Assembly (NCBI RefSeq): GCF_003918875.1
Contig: NW_025767419.1
Coordinates: 310,001 to 374,000 of the forward strand
Reading direction: 5' to 3'
Source of the DNA: Haliotis rubra
Taxonomy: Eukaryota
DNA length: 64,000 nt
The notes below the pieces were generated by a model. That model was not told the origin of the DNA. It made no database searches and worked only from the letters and a program-made list of their open reading frames with translations. Made by a program: the position numbers and the translations under genes. The stretch's first letter is position 1; each line of letters begins with the position of its first letter. Shown piece after piece: positions 226 through 61,286 of this stretch.

Positions 226-1612
226 CTCATACTCAACTTGTTTATCTGTGACCGGGTGACCTTCCTTCTTCCATCTGACCAGTCCCCCGTTTAAAAGCGA
301 CACATTGGTTATGCCGTGATACTGGATAAGAAAGTCTGTGGTTTACCAGCAACATATACGTTATACCTGGAATCCAGTCGGACAACGTTTAATTTAACTC
401 ACTGTCTACTTAAATCCATCTTAGCATACTGATTGCAAATAACTTCACGTAATGTGGTGTATTAATGTTTCAGGTGAATATTAACTGTCCTACCTTATAC
501 CGCTTCAAAATATCAGACATTTTGTCAGCCTAAACTTCAGTTTAAGAACTATTCTTTGTCTGCTTCAAAATGACTTCGCCGATAAGGCGCGGGCACGTAC
601 GTAGCTATACTTAGATCAAACTAGACTTTCCTCCCGAAGTAAAATATTTGCTCATTCAGTGATATGTTTTCAACAAGACGAAGTCTTTCAAAGGCGGATT
701 ATTTTGCGGACTTTGTTTTCCTCTATCAATAATATGTAAACTTAAATTTCCATACCCACTCCACCGGGGGCTCCACCCTACTATTCCAGGAAGGGTACTA
801 CTTCTCTGAATGCTGATATGTGGATAATATGGGGATAGATTCACAAAACATACCGGGATAGATTCACAAAATATACCGTTAACAGAGAATAATAGGTTAC
901 CCTTAACAGCCACCATCCTCGAGATGCTGCAAATCCGTTCAGTTGAACATTTTCGTACACGATCACATGACTTGATGAGTTAATGCCGAGAGATCTCAAG
1001 TAATCTTGAAAAACTCCGGGATCTTGTAGCCCCAAAGGGAGGTGTTGAGTGAAGGGGGCATGCTTTTTTATGTTGAGAAACTGTGCTCCTTCTATATGTT
1101 CACTGGCAAACAAAACGTGAACATGCATTCATTTAAAAATAAATGCATAATATTATCAAATATATTATCACAAATATTCTTAATTTTGTGAAAGAAAAAA
1201 ATAAATTGAGAAACGTAGTGTATAATGTATATATTCTGCAATTATAAAAAAAAATTTTAGAAAGATTTTCTAACTTAGTCGTTGCGGTGCATATGTTACA
1301 GTCAAAATCAGTCAATTTGTAAATCGCCTGAAAATTTCAGTCAATTTACAAATTGCCTGATTTTACACATTGACTGTTACATATACATCAGGTAGAATGC
1401 ACCTCCAAAATGCAACCTAACTTATTATTTAAATTACGAAACCAACATGCTCTACATTACGACATAGTAATGGGGTGCCGTTATCATTACCTCTTAAACT
1501 CATCCACAGAAGGCCCGGAAGGTCCAATGGTTGTATCAAAAATTCTCAAATCTTTGTTACCGGCGTTGATTTGACTTGACAGCCATTCCGGAGTTACCAG
1601 CGGAGAAACCAT
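226..1612 (-). CDS. Rhodanese/MPST-like sulfurtransferase, copy A (5' part only; continues off the left edge)
   Basis: Exons 1612-1491, 1102-901 and 321-226, all GT-AG and phase-consistent: MVSPLVTPEWLSSQ...EHIEGAQF...SHVIVYE...ASRGWWLLR-YHGITNVSLLNGGLVRWKKEG. These are typical N-domain motifs of tandem rhodaneses. An in-frame upstream ATG lies at 1654. Confidence 0.88.
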
Positions 1613-4981: not shown

Positions 4982-7900
4982 TCACAGTTTGCTGCTCTCC
5001 ACTTCGGCGGAAGAAGCTTTTTGTCCGTACTCCGTCCAGGAACCCTTCAAACATTCAATATATCTGCTTAGATTATACAGCTCGACAAACGTGAAGAAGT
5101 ACAACTAGGATAATTTGAAATATGAAAAAGATTCAAGAATACTCATTAGACATAAACACAAACAGGTAAATGTTTGGAATGCCAGTACAATCTACCGAGA
5201 ATGGATTATACTCACATAGTAGACGCTGACGTCATCCTTCCCACACACAGAGGCAGCCAAGGCGAGTGTACAGGCTGTGAAACCCACGTAACAGGTTGTC
5301 GTCATAGGTTGGTCCATCTTGACCCCCACTGACTGAAACACTGGACAACAGGACACATTCTACTACTTGTATGGATGTACATATACATGTATAGATTGAA
5401 AATGTACATGTGAATGTGAGAATATTATTGACCGATTGAAGCATGTGTTAAAGAAAGTCATCGAGAAATACACAAATGCTAGAATACCTACAGCGACAGG
5501 TGACATGTAGAGATGGACAATGTACATGTGAATGTGAGAATATTATTGACCGATTGAAGCATGTGTTAAAGAAAGTAATCGAGAAATACACATAGGCTAG
5601 AATACCTACAGTGACGCGTGACTTAAATACGTCACAATAGATATCCCTTTCTGCACACTGCCCTTAACGATAGGGGTGAAACGGTCTACCGCGGTATTTG
5701 TAGAACTGCGGTATTTTGCCTCGGTTCGGTATACCGTAATGCAATCCAAACATTCGGTATTTTCGGTTTTCGTACCGTCATTTTATTAACCTTTCAAAAC
5801 CCTTTTCAAAATGTCTTGATATCGAATCATTTTGTCAAAATCTACCTAGATATGATCATATCTCATGTACCGAACAGAAGGCTTTTGTACCGTACCGTGG
5901 TAAGAGCAAACCGTTTCACGGCTACTTAACGATCAGTTGTGATTTCTATGCAGAAACAAACCGTGAAGTTAAAAATAGAACGATTATTTCAGTTTCAGGA
6001 TGAAAAAGGTCTTAGCATGAACGTTCAATGTCTACCTTTCGGCGAGATCACAAGCTCAAATTATTTTCTGGACTTTTTTGTGATACTACTATTTCTTTAT
6101 ATTGCATTGTGAATCGTTTAAATCTTATGATCCCAAATACTAAGAGAATACAAATACCTTTTGTACATAATGTTAGGAGAATATAAACGGCAAACCCTTT
6201 CCATGTTGATAAGAAATTTCCGTTTTTAATCAGTTGATTGTAGGATTGCGACTTGATCTGACTTGTTATAAACATGTGTTATGAATCAATATCAAACAGT
6301 CATGATACTTGTGAACGCGAAAAAAGTAAACTTTCCTGAATGGAGAGTTACATTACCCTCACTCGTCACAAAGTTTCCACACGCAAAGGCATATCAATTG
6401 TTCACCTAAACAGTTGCAATCTACAAGACCACCTTAACTGCGAGTAATAATTTCTCCATGGTAACTCACATCCTAGAAGTTGGTCCTTCCCTTTGAGGGA
6501 GATGGTGTCGTCCTCGTACAGTGTCGAGTAGAAGATGTTGACGGCCCCGGGAATGTGCCCGGTTTGAAACGTCAGACCTTCTGACTTCAGTCCCACATAA
6601 TCCATGCAGAAAGTCTGAACTGTAGGTAGATTAAATACTGTTATGAAGCATTGAATCTCCGAACTCCTACAAAATCCATTGACATGAAAATTGTATCATT
6701 CAGGTTTTCTGTTATTTGGAAGTTTAACGGTATGTAATGGATGTTCAGTTATATTGATCTTGGGTCATTTCGATGCACACGTTAACAAATCTTCAAAATG
6801 TGTATGTGTGTGTCATCATATATTTGAACGTCTCTGTTTATATCACACGTAATTTGTGAATATAATTACATTTTGAGGGTTCTTTCTCTTTGCCATCAAA
6901 ATTGTCGGGGTGTCGAGTGTCCACGAACTGTCGGCCATCTCCGGGTTTGATGTCATCGTACAGCATTACCAGGCTTTTGTTGAACTTGACCGTTACGTCA
7001 CCGTTCTGGGAAATATTACCAGCATATATCCATTTTGGCTGACATGGGTTATAAATATTTACAAGGTCTGTTGACGCAAGATGGGTTTTTCACATTTGCA
7101 TCACAATGAAATGTCTTTCATATCAAAACTTCTTTGTTAAAGACATTTATTGTCTGAATATTAGTGGCATGAAGTTTTCCAACTGAGCACTCACCTCATA
7201 CTTGACCTCCTTATCTGTGACTGGGTAACCTTCCTTCTTCCATCTGACCAGTCCCCCGTTTAAAACAGACACATTCGTTATACCGTGAACCTGTTGAGAC
7301 AAAATAGTAACTACTTTACCAACAAAACTTTCCTTATTACTTTTAATTGTAGGGACAATCTAGCCATCACATTCTAGAGAGCATACATGCCACTAAAATT
7401 TCAGATAATAGAACGTCCCTCAGAATGGCACGCTAGATTATGAACCTGGAACATCATCGCATTCCTAGCGACACATTCGTTATAACATGTAGCTGTAGGG
7501 GTAATGTAGCCATCACATTCCTAGCGACACATTCCTTACAACATGTAGCTGTAGGGACAATGTAGCCATCACATTCCTAGCGACACATTCGTTACAACAT
7601 GTAGCTGTAGGGACAATGTAGCCATCACATTCCTAGCGACACATTCGTTACAACATGTAGCTGTAGGGACAATGCAGCCATCACATTCCTAGCGACACAT
7701 TCGTTATAACGTACAATGTGGTCATCACATTCCTAGCGACACATTCGTTACAACAATGTGGCTGTAGGGACAATGCAGCCATCACATTCCTAGCGACACA
7801 TTCGTTACAACATATAGCTGTAGGGACAATGTAGCCATCACATTCCTAGCGACACATTCGTTACAACATGTAGCTGTAGGGACAATGTAGCCATCACATT

Positions 7901-9159
7901 CCTAGCGACACATTCGTTACAACATGTAGCTGTAGGGACAATGTGGTCATCACATTCCTAGCGACACATTCCTTACAACATGTAGCTGTAGGGACAGTGT
8001 AGCTATTACATTCCTAGCGACACATTCGTTACAACATGTAGCTGTAGGGACAATGTGGTCATCACATTCCTAGCGACACATTCGTTACAACATGTAGCTG
8101 TAGGGACAATGTGGTTTTCACATTCCTAGTGACACATTCGTTACAACATGTAGCTGTAGGGACAATATGGTCATCACATTCCTAGCGACACATTCGTTAT
8201 AACAGGTAGCTGTAAGGACAATGCGGTCATCAAATTCCTAGCGACACATTCGTTATAACATGTAGCTGTAGGGACAATCAGTTTGCAGTGTCTTAAATAC
8301 CAACGTGAAGAGGATGCCTGTTTGGAGATTAAAATGCCGGAGAACTTATGACCTGGCCTTGAAAGAAAGGTCATACTAGTAAATAGAGAAAAGTACTTTA
8401 CTCTAAACAGCCACCATCCCCGAGATGCTGCCATTCCATTAAGCTGAACATTTTCGTACAGGATCACGTGACTTGATGCGTTAATGCCGAGAGATCTGAC
8501 ATAATCTTGAAATACGGAGGGATCTGGTAACCCAACAGGAAGATACTGAGTGTGGGGAGCATTCTTCACTATGTTCACAAGCTGGGCTCCTTCTATATGC
8601 TCACTGGAAAATAAAATTGAAAAGGCGTAAAAATTAAATAATATATTGTAGACAAGACATATATACATGCTGAAGAAGCAAAGCTGTACGTTATGATTAT
8701 TCCAGTTAAATCTTTTATAATGTGTGTACCATTTCAAACCTACTGTTCATAACATGCAGCATATTGTTAGTTTTGTCAAAACAAATAGATCAAATCCAGA
8801 CATATGCTTATTAAAAATGCTTTCAAATATACATGTATCTGGTCATATTATCAGTTTCATACCTTGTAGCCGATGTACAACAATTGTCTAATGTTAAACC
8901 TGAATGATGAATCAGAAACACATTTAGCCTACTGAAACGTAACATCGGTCGCACCTCCAAAACGCAGCCTGACATTTAGTGACTTTGTAAAACGGAGAAA
9001 TACAGCTTAACATTGTGTTCAAGGCACATGCTGTTACCTTTTAAACTCATCTATTGATGGTCCAGAAGGTCCTATGCTTGTATCCAAAACTCTCAGGTCT
9101 TTGTTGCCAGCTTTTATTTGACTTGAGAGCCATTCAGGAGTTACCACAGGGTCGACCAT
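4982..9159 (-). CDS. Rhodanese/MPST-like sulfurtransferase, copy B (complete, 7 exons, 297 aa)
   Basis: Exons 9159-9038, 8603-8402, 7290-7195, 7005-6870, 6619-6470, 5340-5216 and 5044-4982 total 894 nt, open frame, all GT-AG. Motifs: VTPEWL, HIEGA, RGWWLFR, LNGGL..W, FVDTR, GHIPGAVN, active-site TCYVGFTAC, and YYGSWTEY. Confidence 0.92.
5671..5924. mobile_element. hAT-like MITE in intron 5 of copy B
   Basis: TIR taggggtgaaacggt / accgtttcacggcta, 8-bp TSD cttaacga (5663-5670, 5925-5932), and subterminal cggta/taccg repeats. Absent from C and D. Confidence 0.82.
7460..8278. repeat. 56-bp minisatellite (about 14-15 copies) in intron 2 of copy B
   Basis: Unit cattcctagcgacacattcgttacaacatgtagctgtagggacaatgtagccatca, starting at 7460, 7516, 7572, 7628 and onward. 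Confidence 0.95.
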
Positions 9160-10381: not shown

Positions 10382-12780
10382 TCATAGTGTACAAGTACTG
10401 TTCACTCATCGATATGTTATCTCCCGATGACAAAGAGGGCTGGGAAGGTATTGATGAAAAAAAACAGGACGTGAATTAGTTACCTATAAAAAAGAAAGAA
10501 AACCATTCGTCCTTCAGATTGTAATTTAATGGTCATGAAGTACAAAACGAAATATATACCAGGCATATCCACAAACGGAAATTTACATGCATAGTACGGA
10601 GCATGGTTTATTACATATCATTTTAATTTCATCAACACAAACATCAAAACATCATGAAAACTGTAACGATTAGAAGTACATATACTCGCTTAATACACTA
10701 TTAACCGTCTAACAGAGATACTAATACATACCACGTATTGACTGGGATGCCGTGTGACCATTGTAGCAGCAGTTAGAGAACATGGTTGGAAATAGGAGCA
10801 TGTTTGCCTGAACAATAAGTCGCCTTCATGGCCTAAATGGACTCCCTTGACACAACTATTTGAAATTTCAGTAGCATACGCAATGTCATGTATGAAGAAC
10901 GGAACAGTCTGTATTTGAAATGTATACTTGTAACATTACCATGACAACGTCAAACAGATTCCGCCTGGGACTCCTTCTATCACATTGAGTCCACGCACAG
11001 ACACACTATTCCTAACAACAGTTGATTATCATACTATACACTGATGCATTAACGACGGAGTTTTTTCGGCCGTTAGTTAAATCCTTTGACTAGGGAAGAT
11101 GACAGCTGTTTAAAATCCAATGTAATGTTACATCAGTAGCAGTAGTAGATTATCGCCCTTTGATTATGTTCTTCAAAAAAGCATATTTTTTATAGCGGGT
11201 TTATTATATCGTTGGAGGTTGAGAGTGATCCCCTTGGCATTTTTGCAAGCCAGCGGCTCCAGCCGTGCAGTAAAAGAAATATGAGGATATAATAGGCAAT
11301 CCGATTGCATCGGAAAATATAGGACAACTAAGGTGTAACTACTCTCTACTTCTTACATATAGAGTATTTTAGTGTAAAGTGATTTTATCTATGTGAAGAA
11401 ATATACATGTAGTTGATTTGTGTGTTTTACCTGGGCTACAATGGAGATAAATTTGATGGAAACGAACCTTTTAAATTTCGTCAATTTATGTTATTGTAAA
11501 ATGAGGTTTGTACTTAGGATATATTTCACTTTTCAACCTGTATCAATTACTGAAGTCTTATTTTGTATATTATCCTATCTGGTTCATGTTATAAGGTATA
11601 GGACTTGTCAAATCACTTTGAAATAGGATATAGGATTTTATATGATCTATGATATGCGAAATAGGACATAGGATTTTATGGAACTTCATTGTAATTCAGA
11701 CCTTTGTTTTGTTTACAGCTTTTTACTAAATGAACGTGAGTTTATTGAAACACATCCTTCGGCAAGAAGATACATATATATGCCTTGAGAAGGAAAGCAT
11801 TAAAAGATAACAACAAGAGAATATTGGGTTCAAGGTCAGAGGTGAGGCTGATCTGTGGGCTGCCCTAATAAACAATGAGTATGTTAGGATGGGCAACTAC
11901 AGTTAGGATGGGCAACTACAGTTGCCAGCAGCAGCAATGGGCAACAATGTTGCCAGCAGCAAATAGAGCAATCGCATTTCTGCAGAAAAGCAGACAATAA
12001 TAAGGCAAAGCCAAAAGATTCCTATCCGCTGAGAAGCAGAAAGGTTAAACAGATTCCGGCTGAAGAGCCGTCCTGCCATAAATTTGAATATTGCCTAAGT
12101 ATTAATGATTGAGCCCACAACATCCAGGCCACCCCTAACATTTATTGACATAGGCATATATACACAGACATTACAAGCCCTTTGCCAATAATGTACAATC
12201 TGGAAACAGAAAGAAGAAAGAGATGGCTGGCAAGGGAAGGGTGGGAGGGAAGCGAAAATATAACTTAATGCAGGATACAAAGAGGATAGACTAACTGTGC
12301 GAATCTAAAAAATCAATGGATGAACAAAAGATGACGTAATCAGAAGTAGACACATGACGTCATTGGAATTAACATAACTGGAAGTTACGTAAGCAAACAT
12401 AAAAGAGCGGGAAGAATGAACTGAAAGTAAGTGTGAATGGTTTCAATAAATGCATTGAGTGTTAAGCACTAAATGAGAGTAATTTCAATCTGAGGACTGT
12501 AATAAATAACGACGAAACGAGGTTGGACAATGAAGCTCATGATCAGACTCTCTTCGATTTCAATACTACAAAGCAGAAGCAGATTCCCAGGCCCAAAGAT
12601 GTTGGATGATTATAGTCACTGGGCATCTTTTTGATCACTGTTTGTTGCTCTCCACTTCGACGGCAGAAGCCCTTTGTCCGTACTCCGTCCAGGAACCCTT
12701 CAAACATCCCATGTTTATGCTTAGATGATAAAACTCGACAAAACGTGAAATAGTAAATGTAGGGTAATTTGAAATATAAA

Positions 12781-12844
12781 CCGCCGCCATGTAGCTGGAA
12801 TATTGCTGAATGCGGCGTAAAGCTAAAGTCACTCACACACTCAC
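12781..12844 (+). mobile_element. Short SINE 3' tail insertion in intron 6 (also at about 17801-17856)
   Basis: ccgccgccatgtagctggaatattgctgaatgcggcgtaaa...cactcac, flanked by a tgaaatataaa duplication. Present in C and D, absent in B. Confidence 0.75.
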
Positions 12845-14307
12845 TGAAATATAAAAAAAGATTAAAGATTACTCATTGGACATAAACATAAACAGATTAA
12901 TGTTTGGAATGCCAGTACAATCTACCGATAATGGATTGTACTCACACAGTAGACGCTGACGTCATCCTTCCCACACACAGAGGCAGCCAAGGCGAGTGTA
13001 CAGGCTGTGAAACCCACGTAACAGGTTGACGTCATAGACTGGTTCATCTTGACCCCTACTGACTGAAACACTGGACAACAGGACACATTCTACTACTTGT
13101 ATGGATGTACATATACATATACATGTACAGATTGAAAATGCACATGTGAATGTGAGAATGTGATTGATTGATTGATTGGTTGATGGATGGATTGAAGTTT
13201 GTGGTTAAAAGAAAGTCATCGAGAAATACACAAAGGCTAGAATACCTACAGCGGCAGGTGACTTAAACACGTCACAATAGATATCCCTTTTTCTATTATG
13301 ATTTCTATGTAGAAACAACCAGTGAAGTTAAAAATAGCACGATCATTTCCGTTTTAGGATGAAAAAGGTCTTAGCATGAACGTTCAATGCCTACTTTTAG
13401 ACGAGATCGCAAGCTTGATTTTGTTCTGGACTTTTTTCTTGAATACTAATAATTCTTTATATTGCATTGTGAATCGTTTAAAACATATGATCCAAAATAT
13501 ACTACAATAATACAAATACCTTTTGTACATAATGTTAGGAGAATATAAAGGACAAACCCTTTCCATGTTGATACCAAATTTCCGTTTTTAATCAATTGAT
13601 TGTAGGATTGCGACTAGATCTGACTTGTTATAAACCTGTGTTATGAATCAATATCAAACAGTCATGATACTTGTGAACGCAAAAACTGTGACACTCGTCA
13701 CAAACACGCGAAAGCATGTCAATTGTTCACCTGAAAAAGTTGCAATCTCCAGACCATCTAGACTACGAGTACTATCTGCTCTATGTTAACAAACATCCTA
13801 GACGTCCATCAACGTTTCCTGTCCTATCGGTGACATCCGTCACAAACACACGTAAAAGCATGTCAATTCTTCACCTAAAAGGCTAAAACAGTTGCAATAG
13901 TCAAGAGGAACTAGACTACAAGTAATCATTTCTCCATGGTAACTCACATCCTAGAAGTTGGTCCTTCCCTTTGAGGGAGATGGTGTCGTCCTCATACAGA
14001 GCTGGGTAGGAGATGTTGACGGCCCCGGGAATGTGCCCGGTTTGAAACGTCAGGCCTTCTGACTTGACTCCGACATAATCCATGCAGAATGTCTGCACTG
14101 TATTGAACATTAAATACTGTTATAAAAACCTGAATCACAGAGCCCTTTATAATTTAATCTATCAACATGAAATCTGTATTATTCATTTTTTTTCTGTTAT
14201 TTGGACACTGTGAAAGGTTAACGGTATGTAATAGCTATATTCTGCTATTTGGACACTGTGGGACACTGTGTATATGTATTGACTGTGAAAGTTTAACGGT
14301 AGTATGT

Positions 14308-14664
14308 GAGGTGAGGTGAGGTGAAATTAGGTTTAACGTCGTGCTTGAGAATATTTCGCTCATATGACGACGTGCATGCGTGTGTATGTGTATGTGCGGC
14401 TGCTTGTACTAGCCAAGACTTAAGCTGGTTTTATAGTGCTAGACCACTGAGATACCATGCCGCAGTGAAGCATGAATACCCCACTCAGACACATTATACT
14501 GACTCCGAGCCGACCAGTCCTTGTTGTACCCAATAATGCCGAGCGCCAGACAGGGACCAAAAAGTACCATATTTTAACGTCTTTTGGTATGACGCGGTCG
14601 GGGATCGAACCCGCGACCTTCCCTCTCCGGGCGGACGCTCTAACCACTACACCACGGAGGCGGT
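14308..14664 (-). mobile_element. Family 1 SINE in intron 4 of copy C
   Basis: Reverse complement of the 10029 element with a (gtgag)n tail. Copy B shows the empty site (agtttaacggtatgtaat, about 6721). Confidence 0.88.
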
Positions 14665-17657
14665 TTTAACAGTATGTAATGACTATATTGATCATGACTA
14701 ATTTCGAAGCACAAAAGTTTAAGATGTATATGTGTCATATATTTAAACCTCAGATTCTAACGCTGTTCAAACTAGACGTAGTATTGAAAATTTGTGACTA
14801 TAAGTACTTTTTGATGGCTCTTTCTCTTTGCCATCAAAATTGTCGGGTAGTCGAGTGTCCACGAATTGTCGGCCATCTCCGGGTTTGATGTCATCGTACA
14901 GCATTACCATGCTTTTGTTCAACCTGACCGTTACGTCACCGTTCTAGGGAATATGATCAGCATATATCTATTTTGGCTACATAAGTTATAAATATTTATA
15001 CGGTCTGTTGAATCAATATGGTTTTTTTCCACATTTACATCACAACGAAAATTTCTTTCACATTAAAATTCCTTTGTTAAAGTTATTAATTGTCTGAATC
15101 ATAGTTACGTGATGTTTCCCAACGGAGCACCCACCTCATAGTTGACCTCCTTGTCTGTGACTGGGTAACCCTCCTTCTTCCATCTGACCAGTCCCCCGTT
15201 TAAAACAGACACATTCCTTATACCGTGAACCTGTGGAAACAAACCAGTAACTACTTTACCTTTGAAACTTTCGTTATAACAGATAACTGTAGGGACAATG
15301 TGGTCATCACATTCCTGGAGACCAAACATGCAACTGAAATTTCAGATAATAGAACGTCCCTCAGAATGGCACGCAAGATTATGAATCTGGAACTTAATGT
15401 TGAAAAGCACCACCGTTGAAATGGGGTAAACGTCGTGTTCAAGAATTTACTGATCGACGTGTATGCACGTTTTTATGCGACTGCTTGTACTATCCAGGAC
15501 AAATGCCGGGTTGTACTGCTGCTCGGCCATTTCTGGTGTCCCCGCCGTGATATTGCTGGAATATTGCTAAAGGCGGCGTTAAACCATAGGCATAGGAAAT
15601 TTACATGCATAGTACGGAGCATGGTTTATTACATATCATTTTAATTTCATCAAAACATCATGAAAACTGTAACGATTAGAAGTACATATACTCGCTTAAT
15701 ACACTATTAACCGTCTAACAGAGATACTAATACATACCACGTATTGACTGGGATGCCGTGTGACCATTGTAGCAGCAGTTAGAGAACATGGTTGGAAATA
15801 GGAGCATGTTTGCCTGAACAATAAGTCGCCTTCATGGCCAAATGGACTCCCTTGACACAACTATTTGAAATTTCAGTAGCATACGCAATGTCATGTATGA
15901 AGAACGGAACATAGTCTGTATTTGAAATGTATAACATTACCATGACAACGTCAAACAGATTCCGCCTGGGACTCCTTCTATCACATTGAGTCCACGCACA
16001 GACACACTATTCCTAACAACAGTTGATTATCATACTATACACTGATGCATTAACGACGGAGTTTTTTCGGCCGTTAGTTAAATCCTTTGACTAGGGAAGA
16101 TGACAGCTGTTTAAAATCCAATGTAATGTTACATCAGTAGCAGTAGTAGATTATCGCCCTTTAATTATGTTCCTCAAAAAAGCATATTTTTTATAGCGGG
16201 TTTATTATATCGTTGGAGGTTGAGAGTGATCCCCCTTGGCATTTTTGCAAGCCAGCGGCTCCGGCCATATTTTATGTGCAGTAAAAAGAAAAATGAGGAT
16301 ATAATAGGCAATCCGATTGCATCGGAAAATATAGGACAACTAAGGTGTAACTACTCTCTACTTCTTACATATAGAGTATTTTAGTGTAAAGTGATTTTAT
16401 CTATGTGAAGAAATATACATGTAGTTGATTTGTGTGTTTTACCTGGGCTACAATGGAGATAAATTTGATGGAAACGAACCTTTTAAATTTCGTCAATTTA
16501 TGTTATTGTAAAATGAGGTTTGTACTTAGGATATATTTCACTTTTCAACCTGTATCAATTACTGAAGTCTTATTTTGTATATTATCCTATCTGGTTCATG
16601 TTATAAGGTATAGGACTTGTCAAATCACTTTGAAATAGGATATAGGATTTTATATGATCTATGATATGCGAAATAGGACATAGGATTTTATGGAACTTCA
16701 TTGTAATTCAGACCTTTGTTTTGTTTACAGCTTTTTACTAAATGACCGTGAGTTTATTGAAACACATCCTTCGGCAAGAAGATACATATATATGCCTTGA
16801 GAAGGAAAGCATTAAAAGATAACAACAAGAGAATATTGGGTTCAAGGTCAGAGGTGAGGCTGATCTGTGGGCTGCCCTAATAAACAATGAGTATGTTAGG
16901 ATGGGCAACTACAGTTGCCAGCAGCAGCAGCAGCAGCAATGGGCAACAATGTTGCCAGCAGCAGCAATGGGCAACAATGTTGCCAGCAGCAAATAGAGCA
17001 ATCGCATTTCTGCTGAAAAGCAGACAATAATAAGGCAAAGCCAAAGATTCCTATCCGCTGAGAAGCAGAAGGGTTAAACAGATTCCGGCTGAAGAGCCGT
17101 CCTGCCATAATTTTGAATATTGCCTAAGTATTAATGATTGCAGCCCACAAGATCCAGGCCACCCCTAACATTTATTGACATAGGCATATATACACAGACA
17201 TTACAAGCCCTTTGCCAATAATGTACAATCTGGAAACAGAAAGAAGAAAGAGATGGCTGGCAAGGGAAGGGTGGGAGGGAAGCGAAAATATAACTTAATG
17301 CAGGATACAAAGAGGATAGACTAACTGTGTGAATCTAAAAAATCAATGGATGAACAAATGATGACGTAATCAGAAGTAGACACATGACGTCATTGGAATT
17401 AACATAACTGGAAGTGACGTAAGCAAACATAAAAAAGAATGAACTGAAAGTAAGTGTGAATGGTTTCAATAAACGCATTGAATGTTAAGCACTAAATGAG
17501 AGTAATTTCAATCTGAGGGCTGGAATAAATAACGACGAAACGAGGTTGGACAATGAAGCTCATGATCAGCCTTTCTTCGATTTCAATACTACAAAGCAGA
17601 AGCAGATTCCCAGGTCCAAAGATGTTGGTTGATTATAGTCACTGGGCATCTTTTTGA

Positions 17658-20600
17658 TCACTGTTTGCACTCCACTTCCACGGCAGAAGCCCTTTGTCCG
17701 TACTCCGTCCAGGAACCCTTCAAACATCCCATGTTTATGCTTAGATTATAAAACTCGACAAAACGTGAAATAGTAAATGTAGGGTAATTTGAAATATAAA
17801 CCGCCGCCATGTAGCTGGAATATTGCTGAATGCGGCGTAAAACTAAAGTCACTCACTGAAGTATAAAAAAAGATTAAAGGTTACACATTGGACATAAACA
17901 TAAACAGATTAATGTTTGGAATGCCAGTACAATCTACCGAGAATGGATTGTACTCACACAGTAGACGCTGACGTCATCCTTCCCACACACAGAGGCAGCC
18001 AAGGCGAGTGTACAGGCTGTGAAACCCACGTAACAGGTTGAGGTCATGGGTTGGTTCATCTTGACCCCTACTGACTGAAACACTGGACAACAGGACACAT
18101 TCTACTACTTATATGGATGTACATATACATATACATGTACAGATTGAAAATGTACATGTGAATGTGATTGATTGATTGATTGATTGAAGTTTGTGGTTAA
18201 AAGAACGTCATCGAGAAATACACAAAGGCTAGAATACCTACAGCGACAGGTGACTTAAATACGTCACAAAAGATATCCCTTCTGCACATCTTCTTCTTTA
18301 GTTATGATTTCTATGTAGAAACAACCAGTGAAGTTAAAAATAGCACGATCATTTCAGTTTTAGGATGAAAAAGGTCTTAGCATGAACGTTCAATGCCTAC
18401 TTTTAGACGAGATCGCAAGCTCGATTTTGTTCTGGACTTTTTTCGAGAATACTAATATTTCTTTATATTGCATCATTGTGAATCGTTTAAAACATATGAT
18501 CCCAAATACTAAAATAATACAAATACCTTCTGTACATAATGTTAGGAGAATCAAACCCTTTCCATGTTGATACCAAATTTCCGTAGGATTGCGACTAGAT
18601 CTGACTTTGTTATAAACATGTGTTATGAATCAGTATCAAAAGTCATGATACTTGTGAACGCAAAAACTGTGACACTCGTCACAAACATGCGAAAAGCATG
18701 TCAATTGTTCACCTGAAAAGTTTGCAATCTCCAGACCATCTAGACTACGAGTACTATCTGCTCTATGTTAACAAACATCCTAGACGTCCATCAACGTTTC
18801 CTGTCCCATCGGTGACATCCGTCACAAACACACGTAAAAGCATGTCAATTGTTCACCTAAAAGGCTAAACCAGTTGCAATCGTCAAGACCATCTTAACTG
18901 CGAGTAGTAGTTTCTCCATGGTAACTCACATCCTAGAAGTTGGTCCTTCCCTTTGAGGGAGATGGTGTCGTCCTCGTACAGGGCTGGGTAAGAGATGTTG
19001 ACGGCCCCAGGAATGTGTCCGGTTTGAAACGTCAGGCCTTCTGACTTGAGTCCGACATAATCCATGCAGAATGTCTGCACTGTATTGAACATTAAATACT
19101 GTTATAAAAACTGAATCACAGAGCCTTTTATAATTTAATCTATCAACATTTCCGTTTGTGGATCGATGCCTGGTATATATTTCGTTTTGTACTTCATGAC
19201 CATTAAAATTACAATCTGAAGGACGAATATTTTTCATTCTTTTTATAGGTGACTAATTCTCGTCCTGTGTGTTTCATCAATACCTTCCCAACCCTCTCTT
19301 TGTCAATGGGAGATAACATATCGATTAGTAAGCAGTACTTGTACACTATGAGGAGTGAGTCGTAATTGGGTTTAACGTCGTGCTTGAGAATATTTCGCTC
19401 ATATGACGACGTGCATGCGTGTGTATGTGTATGTGCGGCTGCTCGTACTAGCCCAGACTTAAGCTGGTTTTATAGTGCTAGCGCACTGAAATACCATGCT
19501 GCAGTGAAGCATGAATACCCACTCAGACACATTATACTGACTCCGAGCCGACCAGTCCTAGTTGTACCCATTAATGCCGAGCGCCAGGCAGGGACCAAAA
19601 AGTACCATATTTTAACGTCTTTTTGTATGACGCGGTCGGGGATCGAACCCACGACCTTCCGCTCTCCGGGCGGATGCTCTTACCACTACACCACGGAGGC
19701 GGTTTTAACTGTATGCAATGACTATATTGATCATGACTAACTTCGAAGCACAAAAGGTTAAGATGTATATGTGTCATATATGTAAACCTCAAACCCGTTC
19801 AAACTAGACGTAGTATTGAAAATTTGTGACTATAAGTACTTTGTGATGGTTCTTTCTCTTTGCCATCAAAATTGTCGGGTAGTCGAGTGTCCACGAACTG
19901 TCGGCCATCTCCGGGTTTGATGTCATCGTACAGCATTACCAGGCTTTTGTTCAACCTGACCGTTACGTCACCGTTCTAGGAATATGATCAGCATATATCT
20001 ATTTTGGCTACATAAGTTATAAATATTTATACGGTCTGTTGAATCAATATGGGTTTTTACATCACAACGAAAATTTCTTTCACATTAAAATTCCTTTGTT
20101 ATAGACATTAATTGTCTGAATCATAGTTACGTGATGTTTCCCAACGGAGCACCCACCTCAGAGTTGACCTCCTTGTCTGTGACTGGGTAACCCTCCTTCT
20201 TCCATCTGAACAGTCCCCCGTTTAAAACAGACACATTCTTTATACCGTGAACCTGTGGAAACAAACCAGTAACTACTTTACCTTTGAAACTTTCGTTATA
20301 ACAGATAACTGTAGGGACAATGTGGTCATCACATACCTGGAGACCAAACATGCTACTGAAATTTCAGATAATAGAACGTCCCTCAGAATGGTACGCAAGA
20401 TTATGAATCTGGAACACCACGGTTTAAATGGGGTAAACGTCGCGTTCGAAAGGATTTTACTGATTGACGTGTATGCACGTGTTTGTGCGACTGCTTGTAC
20501 TATCCATGACAAATGCCGTCTTGTACTGGTGTCCCCGCCGTGATATTGCTGGAATATTGCTACCATCCTCGAGATGCTGCCATTCCATTAAGCTGAACAT

Positions 20601-21317
20601 TTTCGTACAGGATCACGTGACTTGATGCGTTAATGCCGAGAGATCTGACATAATCTTGAAATAGAGAGGGATCTGGCAACCCAACAGGAAGATACTGAGT
20701 GCGGGAAGCATTGTTCGCTATGTTGAAAAACTGGGCTCCTTCAATATGCTCACTAGAAAGTGAAATTGAAAAGGCGTAAAACATTTAATAATCAATGGTA
20801 GAGAAAACTGACATATACATGCAGAACTAAGTAAAGCTGTATACATGTGATTGTACGTTTGTGATTATTCGAAGTTTTTCTAATTAAATCGCTTATAGTG
20901 CGCATATCAAACATACTATGCATAACATGAAGCATATTGTTAGTTTTGTCAAAACAAATAGATAGAATCCAGAGAGATGCGTATTAAATATGCTTTCACA
21001 TATACATGTATCTGGTCATATTATAAGTTTCATACTTTGTAGCCGAAGAACAACAAGTGTCTAATGTTACATCTGTCTACTGAAACATAACATCGGTCGC
21101 ACCTCCAAAACGGAGCCTGACATTTAGTGACTGTAAAAATGAGAAACAGAGCTTAATATTGTGTTCAATGTTACCTGCTACCTTTGGACTGTTACCTTTT
21201 AAACTCCTCTATAGATAGTCCAGAAGGTCCTATGCTTGTATCGAAAACTCTCAGATCTTTGTTACCAGCTTTTATTTGACTTGACAGCCATTCAGGAGTT
21301 ACCACAGGGTCGACCAT
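17658..21317 (-). pseudogene. Sulfurtransferase copy D, probable pseudogene (end of exon 2 and donor deleted)
   Basis: Exons 21317-21196, 20752-20563 (12 nt short), 20252-20157, 19975-19840, 19079-18930, 18082-17958 and 17717-17658. Exon 2 stops at ...ASRGW and runs into TAG inside a SINE fragment. The WLFR|GT end seen in copy B is missing. Confidence 0.78.
19352..19703 (-). mobile_element. Family 1 SINE in intron 4 of copy D (apparently recombinant)
   Basis: Same right flank as the copy C element. Its left flank is an inverted copy of 10381-10582. Confidence 0.85.
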
Positions 21318-27820: not shown

Positions 27821-29235
27821 CCCCCATTTCACTGGGCGCCGACCCATCAACGACCATCCAGATCTATGCCGATTCCAGTTTCCACACTCGAGCGGGCTCA
27901 ATATCAATCGTGGAAAAAAATCCCCAGATGTATGCAATTACGCTTGATATACGCTGAGGGGCGGTGGGGTAGCCTAGTGGTTAAAGCGTTGGCTCGTCAC
28001 ACCGAAGACCCGGGTTCGATTCCCCACATGGGCACAATGTGTTAAGCCCATTTCTGGTGTCCCCGCCGTGATATTGCTGGAATATTGCTAAAAGCGGCGT
28101 AAAACTAAACTCAGTCAGTGATATACGCTGAACGTACAATCAACGTACGCTTTATGCGACTATGATACGATGCACAGCTACTCTAGGCACGATCTGAACC
28201 GACTGCGAACATGTCCCGATTTTCCCCGATTCAACACGCTCAGGTGACGCTTTGATCACGTTCTGATCACGCTGGATGTTGGACATACGCCCATGGCGAT
28301 CCGTTGCAATTCTATTCACGCTTTATCCGATCAACTCCCGATTAATCTTTGATGATGTCACGATCAAATCGGCTAATTTTCCTGAAAATTCTGGTATAAC
28401 AGTTCACAGCCGCTCTTGATTTCTCCATTCACGGCTGCATTGAAAACATGGACCTCCAAGCTTTCCAACCATTGCTCATCCTCCAGCACCAGTTTCAACT
28501 TAACCAGAGACAAAGGATGATACTGTTGCTACGAATGTTGAACTTGAGAAGAAGAAGAAAAGCATTTTGGATGCACCCGTGGTTGGCTCAAGAGAGAAGA
28601 TTAATGTTTGGACACTATGATAGACTGACTGATGCGTGAGTTGAGATCTGAAGATACTTCATCATTTTCAATTACCTGAGGATGCCTCCTCTCATATTTG
28701 ATGAACTGCTCAACACAGTTGGTCCAATACTGGAAAAGTCGGAAACGAACTTCAGAAAAGCCCTTGAACCAGGACTGATCTGGCAGTCACCCTCAGGCAT
28801 ACTAAGTTTTAAGTACCCCACCCTCTCCTATGATTTCAGAGTCTCCGGGCACACAATTGGACAGTTCCTGCCTGATGTGAGTGGTGCTATAGTGGAACAC
28901 TACAAAGATGAGGTGACCAACTGCCCTGTTACATCTGAGGAATGGCGAAGAGTGAGCTTAGACTTTTAACTCAATTGGAACATGCCTCATGTCATTGGGA
29001 CCCTTGATGGAAAGCATGTTGCCATACGTAAACCTCCCAGATCAGAATCCCTCAATTGGTTTCCCTCCTGCTGATCCACTTCCCAACGATGACCAAGACA
29101 CACCCTACTTCATCCTGGCTGACGACGCATTTGCACTTCGAACGTATCTGATGAAACCTTACTCGAGCAGGGGGGACAGGAGCTGATCTCTGAACAGGAG
29201 CTGATCACCAACTGCAGGTTGTCAGAGGGCAAGGA
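27821..29235 (+). mobile_element. Decayed PIF/Harbinger transposon (internally deleted transposase pseudogene)
   Basis: Broken frames at 28448-29235: [53 protein letters not shown] and NCRLS. Probable left end ccccatttcactgg at about 27821. Contains a SINE. Confidence 0.8.
27958..28118 (+). mobile_element. Short tRNA-derived SINE (family 2, about 160 bp)
   Basis: ggggcggtggggtagcctagtggttaaagcg...ggttcgattccc head and tail gctggaatattgctaaaagcggcgtaaaactaaactca, flanked by a tgatatacgctga duplication. Other copies: 31220-31393(-), 31485-31645(+), 40617-40772(+), 45960-46222(-), 55368-55534(-). Fragments near 15527, 20527, 47220, 58540 and 63580. Confidence 0.88.
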
Positions 29236-32810: not shown

Positions 32811-33344
32811 TCTTTCGACAGTATTGTTCCTGATTTCAGTATTACCGCTTCTTCAATGCATACATTATCACGTTATTATTTAAAGGCAAAGGCAATCGTA
32901 TGATTACATTCTACAAAACATACACCAAACTAATTACATAAATGATAGCAGACAAAAACGACGGGATTAATAAACTTTCAAGGTGAAGGAATAAACACTG
33001 CGTTGTGACGTGAATCAGGTGTCTTGTTGATTTATGTACATAACTTGACACGCCCACAAAGTAACAGCATCAAAACAAAGTTCATATATATAGGATGTAT
33101 ATAGAAGAACAACAGGCAGACCCTAACGAACCAAAACAATGTCAGGAGAAGCCGCCTGTTTCATCGGGTAAACGCATCATGGTTGATAATTCATGAATAC
33201 TTTTGGTGATGGAGTGGAGATTGAGCACACAGTTTCATTAAATTAACCCCAAAATATCCATAATACCTAACATTTTTGTTCTAAAGGCAGATCGATGAAT
33301 TGAAACAAATTGACAGTGGAGTATATGTTCTTGCAATCAGCACA

Positions 33345-33868
33345 GGCAATGTTTTAATTACACTATAGTCAGGTATTGTCTTAATTACACTATAGTCAGG
33401 TATTGTCTTAATTACACTATAGTCAGGTATTGTCTTAATTACACTATAGTCAGGCAATGTCTTAATTACACTATAGTCAGGTATTGTCTTAATTACACTA
33501 TAGTCAGGTATTGTCTTAATTACACTATAGTCAGGCAATGTCTTAATTACACTATAGTCAGGTATTGTCTTAATTACACTATAGTCAGGCAATGTCTTAA
33601 TTACACTATAGTCAGGTATTGTCTTAATTACACTATAGTCAGAATTACACTATGTCTTAATTACACTATAGTCAGGCATTGTCTTAATTACACTATAGTC
33701 AGGTATTGTCTTAATTACACTATAGTCAGGTATTGTCTTAATTACACTATAGTCAGGTATTGTCTTAATTACACTATAGTCAGGTATTGTCTTAATTACA
33801 CTATAGTCAGGTATTGTCTTAATTACACTATAGTCAGATATTGTCTTAAATACACTATAGTCAGGCAT
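33345..33868. repeat. 27-bp minisatellite (about 19 copies) just downstream of the GPCR stop
   Basis: Unit ttaattacactatagtcaggtattgtc. It produces the spurious PDYSVIKTI ORFs. Confidence 0.95.
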
Positions 33869-33982
33869 TTTTCCAGCAGCGCGTTCACTTAGATATCCAC
33901 AGTGGGCACACAGATTAATCTGTGAAACACTTGTTACATCCGGGATGTGGGAAAACAAAAGTATCACGAACAGTTGCCGTAC

Positions 33983-39143: not shown

Positions 39144-61286
<22,143 letters not shown>

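Follow-up and report, generated by a model that had tools for sequence, protein, structure and literature searches.

Rhodaneses act by a ping-pong mechanism that passes through a persulfide on the catalytic cysteine. In sulfane-sulfur and H2S biochemistry, thiosulfate sulfurtransferase (TST) and 3-mercaptopyruvate sulfurtransferase (MPST) serve as the reference enzymes, and their specificity is ascribed to a handful of residues. In human 3MST, Arg188 and Arg197 hydrogen-bond 3-mercaptopyruvate (PMC12926118), and the role of a proposed Ser250-His74-Asp63 triad of MPST has been described (PMC10135228). The five residues beside the cysteine in the catalytic loop vary widely between rhodaneses, and the rhodaneses of solved structure include E. 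coli GlpE, with the loop CYHGNS (PMC8533005). The Arg, Thr or Ser at the end of the loop is important for sulfur uptake from thiosulfate, and in human TST the substitution T253V at this position abolishes thiosulfate-to-cyanide transfer (PMC8533005). Here we analyzed a stretch of 64,000 nucleotides from the blacklip abalone Haliotis rubra (bases 310001-374000 of scaffold QXJH01000705.1, assembly GCA_003918875.1), referred to below as the window, whose numbering is used throughout. It contains an intact gene, copy B, which lies in an array of related sulfurtransferase-like loci. Copy B is predicted to encode a two-domain rhodanese that keeps the catalytic cysteine, has lost the side chains known to bind thiosulfate and 3-mercaptopyruvate, and has gained a structured insert. 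From its sequence and predicted fold, we consider it likely, with a probability of roughly 0.55, that copy B is a persulfide-forming sulfurtransferase with a changed sulfur donor and/or acceptor.

Copy B is located on the minus strand at positions 4982-9159 (314982-319159 of the scaffold), in eukaryotic DNA with a regional G+C content of ~39%. This interval had been singled out in an initial annotation of the window and is exactly the extent of the gene from its stop codon to its ATG. With exons set from stop-free stretches and GT..AG boundaries, the gene has seven exons that join into an open reading frame of 894 nucleotides encoding 297 amino acids. Every residue of the protein agrees with RefSeq XP_046549007.1, “thiosulfate sulfurtransferase-like [Haliotis rubra]”, which was recovered from the 90% cluster containing the H. 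asinina ortholog. The gene carries the same automatic label in four Haliotis species and one chiton. Copy B has no N-terminal extension and is therefore probably cytosolic.

The full-length protein matches the Pfam family Rhodanese (PF00581) in two stretches (E = 3.3e-21), and single exons gave only sub-threshold matches to this family. Among proteins of solved structure, its closest sequence matches are human and bovine TST (E ~1e-45 to 1e-46, best 1.7e-46), with MPST at ~1e-37. An AlphaFold2 model built with 140 relatives has a mean predicted local distance difference test score (pLDDT) of 96.5 and a predicted template modeling score of 0.94. Foldseek matched the model to TST (bovine and human) and MPST (human and mouse) with template modeling (TM) scores of 0.81-0.86 and a probability of 1.00. 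As modelled, copy B is a two-domain rhodanese (sulfurtransferase) with tandem alpha/beta domains. The TST structures (bovine 1RHD, 1BOH and 8Q5Z and human 8AGF) share this fold with TM scores of 0.84-0.86 and 33-35% identity and are the best sequence match; the MPST structures (human 4JGT and 3OLH, mouse 5WQJ and E. coli SseA, 1URH) share the fold and domain order with TM scores of 0.81-0.84. Structures of EanB were also among the Foldseek matches, at the level of the general fold only (17-18% identity), and a search of the ESM Atlas returned generic rhodanese clusters only. On the NCBIfam equivalog model for MPST (NF008557), which is a model for bacterial and archaeal annotation, copy B scores 152.1 bits, below the cut-off of 250.

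HMMER alignments of copy B with MPST and TST chains of known structure, which have no gaps in the N-domain segment or the catalytic loop, provided insights into its active site. Cys252 of copy B is at the position of Cys248 in human MPST. Asp63, His74 and Ser250 of human MPST correspond to Val53, Val64 and Val254, and Arg188 (Arg186 in bovine TST) and Arg197 correspond to Asn175 and Ser184. These alignments uphold a manual alignment in the initial annotation, in which the cysteine was kept and the Ser, His, Asp and EPR arginine were replaced. The N-domain strings on which it drew are present as quoted in B (LVNIVKNAPHTQYLPVGLP), A (FLNIKKHAPFTQHLPLGLQ) and D (FFNIANNASRTQYLPVGLP), and the codons of the loop are exactly where it had placed them, with copies B, C and D all encoding T-C-Y-V-G-F-T-A-C. 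Its picture of a divergent sulfurtransferase subfamily that has a hydrophobic aromatic loop, keeps the catalytic cysteine and lacks both the MPST triad and the EPR arginine therefore holds. The absence of the triad, although confirmed, does not set these proteins apart, since it is missing from TST as well: TST carries E, V and K at the triad positions, its Val at the position of His74 being shared with copy B.

The six-residue loop in the C-terminal domain, Cys252-Tyr-Val-Gly-Phe-Thr257, is encoded at 5276..5293 on the minus strand, as located by a match to its 18-base string. It aligns without gaps to the CRKGVT loop of TST and the CGSGVT loop of MPST. Like TST, copy B has its catalytic cysteine in a six-residue loop ending in Thr; the residues that it shares with the MPST loop are the Cys, the Gly (Gly255) and the terminal Thr (Thr257), and the loop is of unchanged length. 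In contrast, the cationic positions +1 and +2 of the TST loop are Tyr253 and Val254 in copy B. Cys252 and Tyr253 are invariant in the alignment of the subfamily, and Cys252, Gly255 and Ala258 are nearly invariant among the 140 relatives. Copy B also has Asn175 in place of Arg186 of TST and YYGSW in place of the YDGSW motif, and its N-terminus is shorter than that of TST.

A further difference, absent from the initial annotation, lies between the EP motif and the GHIPG motif. This segment has 22 residues in copy B, compared with 6 in MPST and 7 in a TST-type relative that has a CRKGVT loop, so that copy B has 15 extra residues relative to TST; the insert is 15-17 residues long in the subfamily. 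In the model of copy B it includes a helix (residues 185-193) predicted with a pLDDT of 92-95. Judging from the alignments, copy B is set apart by the insert combined with the absence of Arg186/188 and of any loop cation.

These features are not confined to copy B. A ten-member profile was searched against 1.84 billion representative proteins and yielded 18,295 relatives at E <= 0.001, the best 150 of which were tallied for loop and insert. Among these 150, a Cys-Tyr (CY) loop together with a long insert was found in Haliotis, in the chiton Liolophura sinensis (CYVGYT) and in about eight short contigs from metagenome, metatranscriptome and RNA-seq assemblies (CYIGHT, CYNGNA, CYTSLK, CYTGNS, CYNGVS and CYNGNN). 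The contig sources among the relatives in the subfamily include GCA_013332915.1, ERR14707600, SRR31837527 and a JGI sample (3300019028). The exact motif CYVGFT was seen only in Haliotis genes of type B; the loop is CYIGFT in types A and E and CYVGLT in type F. An earlier description of the enzyme as lineage-specific thus applies to the exact motif only, since the subfamily also occurs in L. sinensis and in other eukaryotic contigs. In the alignment of 140 relatives, the distance from the EP motif to GH is 21-23 residues in 15 of the 17 CY-loop proteins and 6 residues in 90 of the 97 CGSG-type proteins. The position of Arg188 is N or H in 15/17 CY-loop proteins and R in 92/97 CGSG-type proteins. 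Arg197 is replaced by S, C, T or A in the CY-loop proteins (R in 76/97 of the CGSG type), and the Asp of YDGSW is Tyr in 11/17 of them (D in 96/97).

In a tree of 86 sequences, a single group unites the 15 long-insert CY-loop proteins, with a support of 90 in the Shimodaira-Hasegawa-like approximate likelihood ratio test (SH-aLRT); within this group, the chiton and abalone proteins come together with a support of 99. This group adjoins a molluscan clade with odd loops, consisting of five Solemya velum paralogs and an Argonauta hians protein, through a weak joining branch (SH-aLRT 73). Both lie outside a branch of 57 sequences (SH-aLRT 99) to which TST and MPST of vertebrate type and the bacterial MPST belong. 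The sequences thus point to a divergent, mollusc-centred subfamily that is not specific to abalone. The neighbouring molluscan TST-like clade resembles the CY-loop subfamily in lacking Arg188 and in having non-canonical loops in multiple paralogs (CQLGVT, CRTGVT, CQTGMT, CTTGMK, CRTGMQ and CRTGVY). It differs in having no insert, the EP...GH segment of 0-4 residues being shorter than in MPST, and no Tyr at position +1. Solemya velum is a sulfide-symbiotic clam. At least five of its paralogs in this clade (P0128, P0131, P0145, P0166 and P0180) are located on one 104.7-Mb chromosome, and the loops of these five differ (CQTGMT, CRTGVT, CTTGMK, CRTGMQ and CRTGVY). E. coli GlpE, like copy B, has a Tyr right after the catalytic Cys, and GlpE-like loops (CYNGNA, CYTGNS and CYNGNN) occur in subfamily members outside molluscs; GlpE is nevertheless a single-domain protein, and the likeness is confined to the loop.

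Variability of the loop is itself an already recognised trait of rhodaneses, but the CY-loop subfamily is coherent and uncharacterised. We found no description of it in the full-text literature on rhodaneses or sulfurtransferases in abalone or Haliotis or on loop motifs. In the literature searched, there was likewise no paper on CYVGFT-type loops, including any that would assign them ordinary MPST or TST kinetics.

Copy B is transcribed and spliced, as read from contigs of a related organism. Contigs of four public runs were placed on 4982-9159: X4, which is of DNA type, and X8 to X10, which are RNA by guess and come from a single study of a close relative of H. rubra coded “organism B”. All six introns of copy B are bridged at the predicted boundaries by X8-X10 contigs. 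For five of the joints, the listed plus-strand ends are CT..AC, equivalent to GT..AG for the gene, and the sixth (5340/6470) consists of adjoining pieces of a single X9 contig. One contig spans exons 4-3-2-1 and a second spans exons 6-5. No intron joint of copy B was present in the contigs of X4. The spliced contigs differ from the exons of copy B by ~1% (for instance, 0/136 in exon 4), whereas the divergence of C and D from B is ~8%; the transcripts are therefore those of the ortholog of B. Non-expression, which had been raised as an objection to a functional reading, is at odds with these contigs.

The exons, all on the minus strand, place the features of the protein along the gene. Exon 1 (9038..9159, with the ATG at 9159-9157) is joined across 8603/9038 to exon 2 (8402..8603), which encodes the N-domain segment with Val53 and Val64 at the positions of Asp63 and His74 of MPST. 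The junction 7290/8402 leads to exon 3 (7195..7290) and the junction 7005/7195 to exon 4 (6870..7005), which encodes Asn175 and Ser184. Exon 5 (6470..6619) follows across 6619/6870, and its bases 6561-6619 encode most of the insert (approximately residues 185-205) before GHIPG. The X9 contig connects exon 5 to exon 6 (5216..5340), which encodes the catalytic loop, and the junction 5044/5216 leads to exon 7 (4982..5044), with the TGA stop at 4982-4984.

Ratios of nonsynonymous to synonymous divergence (dN/dS), calculated by the method of Nei and Gojobori, indicate constraint on copy B. Over nearly the full length, copy B and its H. asinina ortholog give a dN/dS of 0.28 (dS 0.23, Fisher p = 5e-8). 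The ratio is 0.16 between A and B in exons 1-2, and in exons 3-7 it is 0.38 between B and C, 0.33 between B and D and 0.23 between C and D. A value near 1, which would have spoken for decay, was thus not seen for copy B. The C-D value comes from 20 substitutions (dN 0.021, dS 0.093), with a dS above the intron divergence of 3-5%, and we rejected it as proof of function on these grounds. Since the introns of C and D differ by only 3-5%, their dN would be consistent with constraint having relaxed after they were duplicated.

Searches with copy B by tblastn and blastn found four copies in the window (A, B, C and D), of which only B is complete and intact there. On the scaffold, the array continues in the order D-C-B-A-E-F, with E and F downstream and off the window. 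The 18-base string encoding CYVGFT occurs exactly three times, on the minus strand, at 5276-5293 (B), 13006-13023 (C) and 18018-18035 (D). Copy A enters the window with exons 1-3 (226..1612, minus strand; 1491-1612, 901-1102 and 226-321), its exons 4-7 lying before the window start; on the scaffold it is intact, with seven exons, a CYIGFT loop and a gene call of 308 amino acids. Copy C (12635..15230, minus strand) consists of exons 3-7 only (15135-15230, 14808-14943, 13948-14097, 12946-13070 and 12635-12697), with intact frames and splice sites. Exons 1-2 of its own were sought between 15251 and 17636 by tblastn and blastn and not found, and a complete copy C was rejected. Copy D (17658..21317, minus strand) has exons 1-7, but exon 2 lacks its last bases and the donor and carries an in-frame TAG at 20560-20562; the remaining exons are intact. 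A rescue of copy D by a cryptic donor was also rejected, as the sole nearby GT (GGATG|GTAGCA) trims exon 2 by 13 nucleotides and shifts the frame.

Locus E (the gene of P0007) has a CYIGFT loop and needs two frame changes within exon 2. This exon (L002:9958-10162, H. rubra scaffold) reads in three frames, implying two frameshifts or assembly indels, and the RefSeq product of 241 amino acids starts inside it. Locus F (P0008), with 301 amino acids and a CYVGLT loop, appears intact. An earlier count of at least four amplified copies is overstated: the scaffold has six loci, but only three (B, A and F) are apparently intact, C and D are damaged recent duplicates, and the loop of A is CYIGFT. In a tree of the copies, (B,(C,D)) is a group of the H. 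rubra lineage (support 98/96) whose sister is H. asinina P0001. The H. asinina orthologs of A and E are P0002 and P0006, respectively, and F branches earlier. Four paralog types are therefore older than the split of H. rubra and H. asinina, and C and D are recent damaged duplicates. That C and D are alleles or assembly duplicates of B was rejected, as their introns differ by 13-17% from those of B and by 3-5% from each other. The lesions of C and D rest on a single assembly.

Repeats are abundant in and around these genes. The cut-off exon 2 of copy D is fused to a repeat-element fragment at 20529..20562 (minus strand), recognised by a 34-mer match. The identical 34-mer of this dispersed repeat, TAGCAATATTCCAGCAATATCACGGCGGGGACAC, is found at 15536-15569 (upstream of exon 3 of copy C), 20529-20562 and 28057-28090, and its copy at 28057-28090 runs on into sequence that looks tRNA-derived, like a short interspersed element. 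Intron 2 of copy B contains a minisatellite (7455..8278, minus strand) of ~15 copies of a 56-bp unit. In each unit, an acceptor-like ccctacag precedes sequence that partly repeats the beginning of exon 3 (TAACGAATGTGTC), which puts ~14 decoy acceptors upstream of the real one; the spliced contigs skip the whole array (7290/8402). In intron 5, the segment 5385-5622 is a 118-bp tandem duplication (2 copies, 92% matches), and 5682-5961 is a very high-copy repeat at which the summed contig depth in X4 is ~31,000, compared with ~100 in the flanks, and many contigs break off in loose ends. This repeat is presumably a transposable element family. Elsewhere in the window, minisatellites with splice-donor-like units are present at 33343-33869 (27 bp x 19, CAGGTATTG) and 43161-45385 (57 bp x 35, TTTAGGTGAGAG), the latter accounting for the strong GC skew at 42-46 kb. 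Another at 50172-51377 (38 bp x 32) contains ACTCACC, or GGTGAGT on the opposite strand. Several splice-site-derived arrays within 64 kb look like more than coincidence.

How might copy B work? It would form a persulfide on Cys252 and hand on the sulfane sulfur by the usual ping-pong route. The residues that bind small oxyanions appear to be gone, including loop positions +1 and +2, Arg186/188, Arg197 and the MPST triad, and a helix-forming insert would have been gained between the positions of the two former arginines. With neutral or hydrophobic residues in place of every side chain known to bind thiosulfate or 3-mercaptopyruvate, and with a structured insert besides, copy B has probably changed its donor and/or acceptor. 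A small oxyanion is improbable in this role; more likely would be a persulfide or thiol that is neutral, hydrophobic, or bound to protein or glutathione. Candidate partners would include glutathione or protein persulfides, polysulfide and a neutral acceptor. Several points weigh against this assignment. The function of the subfamily is read from sequence and predicted fold, and the insert is assigned to the active-site cleft by its place in the sequence. The cation-free loop might bind nothing and serve only as a scaffold or redox sensor. GlpE is a recognised rhodanese with a Cys-Tyr loop, and the loop alone therefore forces no change of specificity. Finally, expression is known from contigs of the close relative “organism B”, in runs whose RNA label is guessed.

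If catalysis requires no more than the loop's backbone amides and its terminal Thr, copy B could instead be an ordinary thiosulfate and/or 3-mercaptopyruvate sulfurtransferase. The solved TSTs are its best matches in both sequence and fold (E = 1.7e-46, TM 0.86), the loop length, Gly255 and Thr257 are retained, and GlpE, with its CYHGNS loop, is among the rhodaneses of solved structure (PMC8533005). Such an enzyme is hard to reconcile with the replacement of Arg186/188, present in 92/97 CGSG-type relatives, by Asn or His, with the loss of Arg197 and both loop cations, and with an insert of 15-17 residues between the two arginine positions. Together with a score of 152 bits against the MPST equivalog cut-off of 250 and a position outside the well-supported branch of vertebrate TST/MPST and bacterial MPST, this makes an ordinary enzyme rather unlikely. 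Less likely still is a non-catalytic rhodanese-fold protein, such as a redox sensor, a binding protein or a pseudoenzyme, in which the Cys is kept for regulation. It would explain why all known substrate-binding side chains are gone and why the loop-end residue varies (A, K, S, N) in the branch of the subfamily outside molluscs. However, Cys252 and Tyr253 are invariant in the subfamily alignment and Gly255 is nearly so, the loop-end Thr is found in every mollusc member, purifying selection is clear, and the six-residue loop geometry of active rhodaneses is retained.

The cluster could also consist mostly of decaying duplicates whose odd residues reflect relaxed constraint and not specialisation, which we regard as very unlikely. 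The losses of exons 1-2 in C, of the donor at the end of exon 2 in D along with the stop gained there, and the two frame changes in exon 2 of E all fit decay, and, with the introns as a neutral yardstick, the dN between C and D (0.021) allows for relaxed constraint. In contrast, the genes B, A and F are intact, spliced contigs show B to be transcribed, dN/dS is 0.16-0.38 throughout, and the same loop and insert are kept between abalone and chiton; decay is therefore limited to C, D and perhaps E. It fits C and D, and neither B nor the subfamily as a whole. For copy B, it is already refuted by transcription and dN/dS. There is a slim chance that the subfamily, with its Cys-Tyr loop, additional helix and hydrophobic pocket, is suited to a chemistry foreign to TST and MPST. 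EanB is a rhodanese-fold enzyme that forms a C-S bond in ergothioneine synthesis. By analogy with it, one possibility within such a chemistry is the transfer of persulfide sulfur to a neutral or aromatic small molecule with formation of a C-S bond; another is the handling of organic polysulfides or persulfides in grazing molluscs. The bulky dietary or environmental organosulfur substrate suggested in the initial annotation is speculation.

A persulfide-forming sulfurtransferase with a changed donor and/or acceptor, which we favor for copy B, has implications beyond this locus. The label “thiosulfate sulfurtransferase-like” carried by these genes is no evidence of TST activity, for instance in studies of sulfide detoxification in molluscs. 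The subfamily replaces at once all the residues to which the specificity of TST and MPST is ascribed and adds a structured insert, yet the gene is conserved from chiton to abalone, transcribed and constrained. The subfamily provides a natural test of which residues serve persulfide formation and which serve substrate choice, and it may indicate an unrecognised sulfur donor or acceptor in molluscs.

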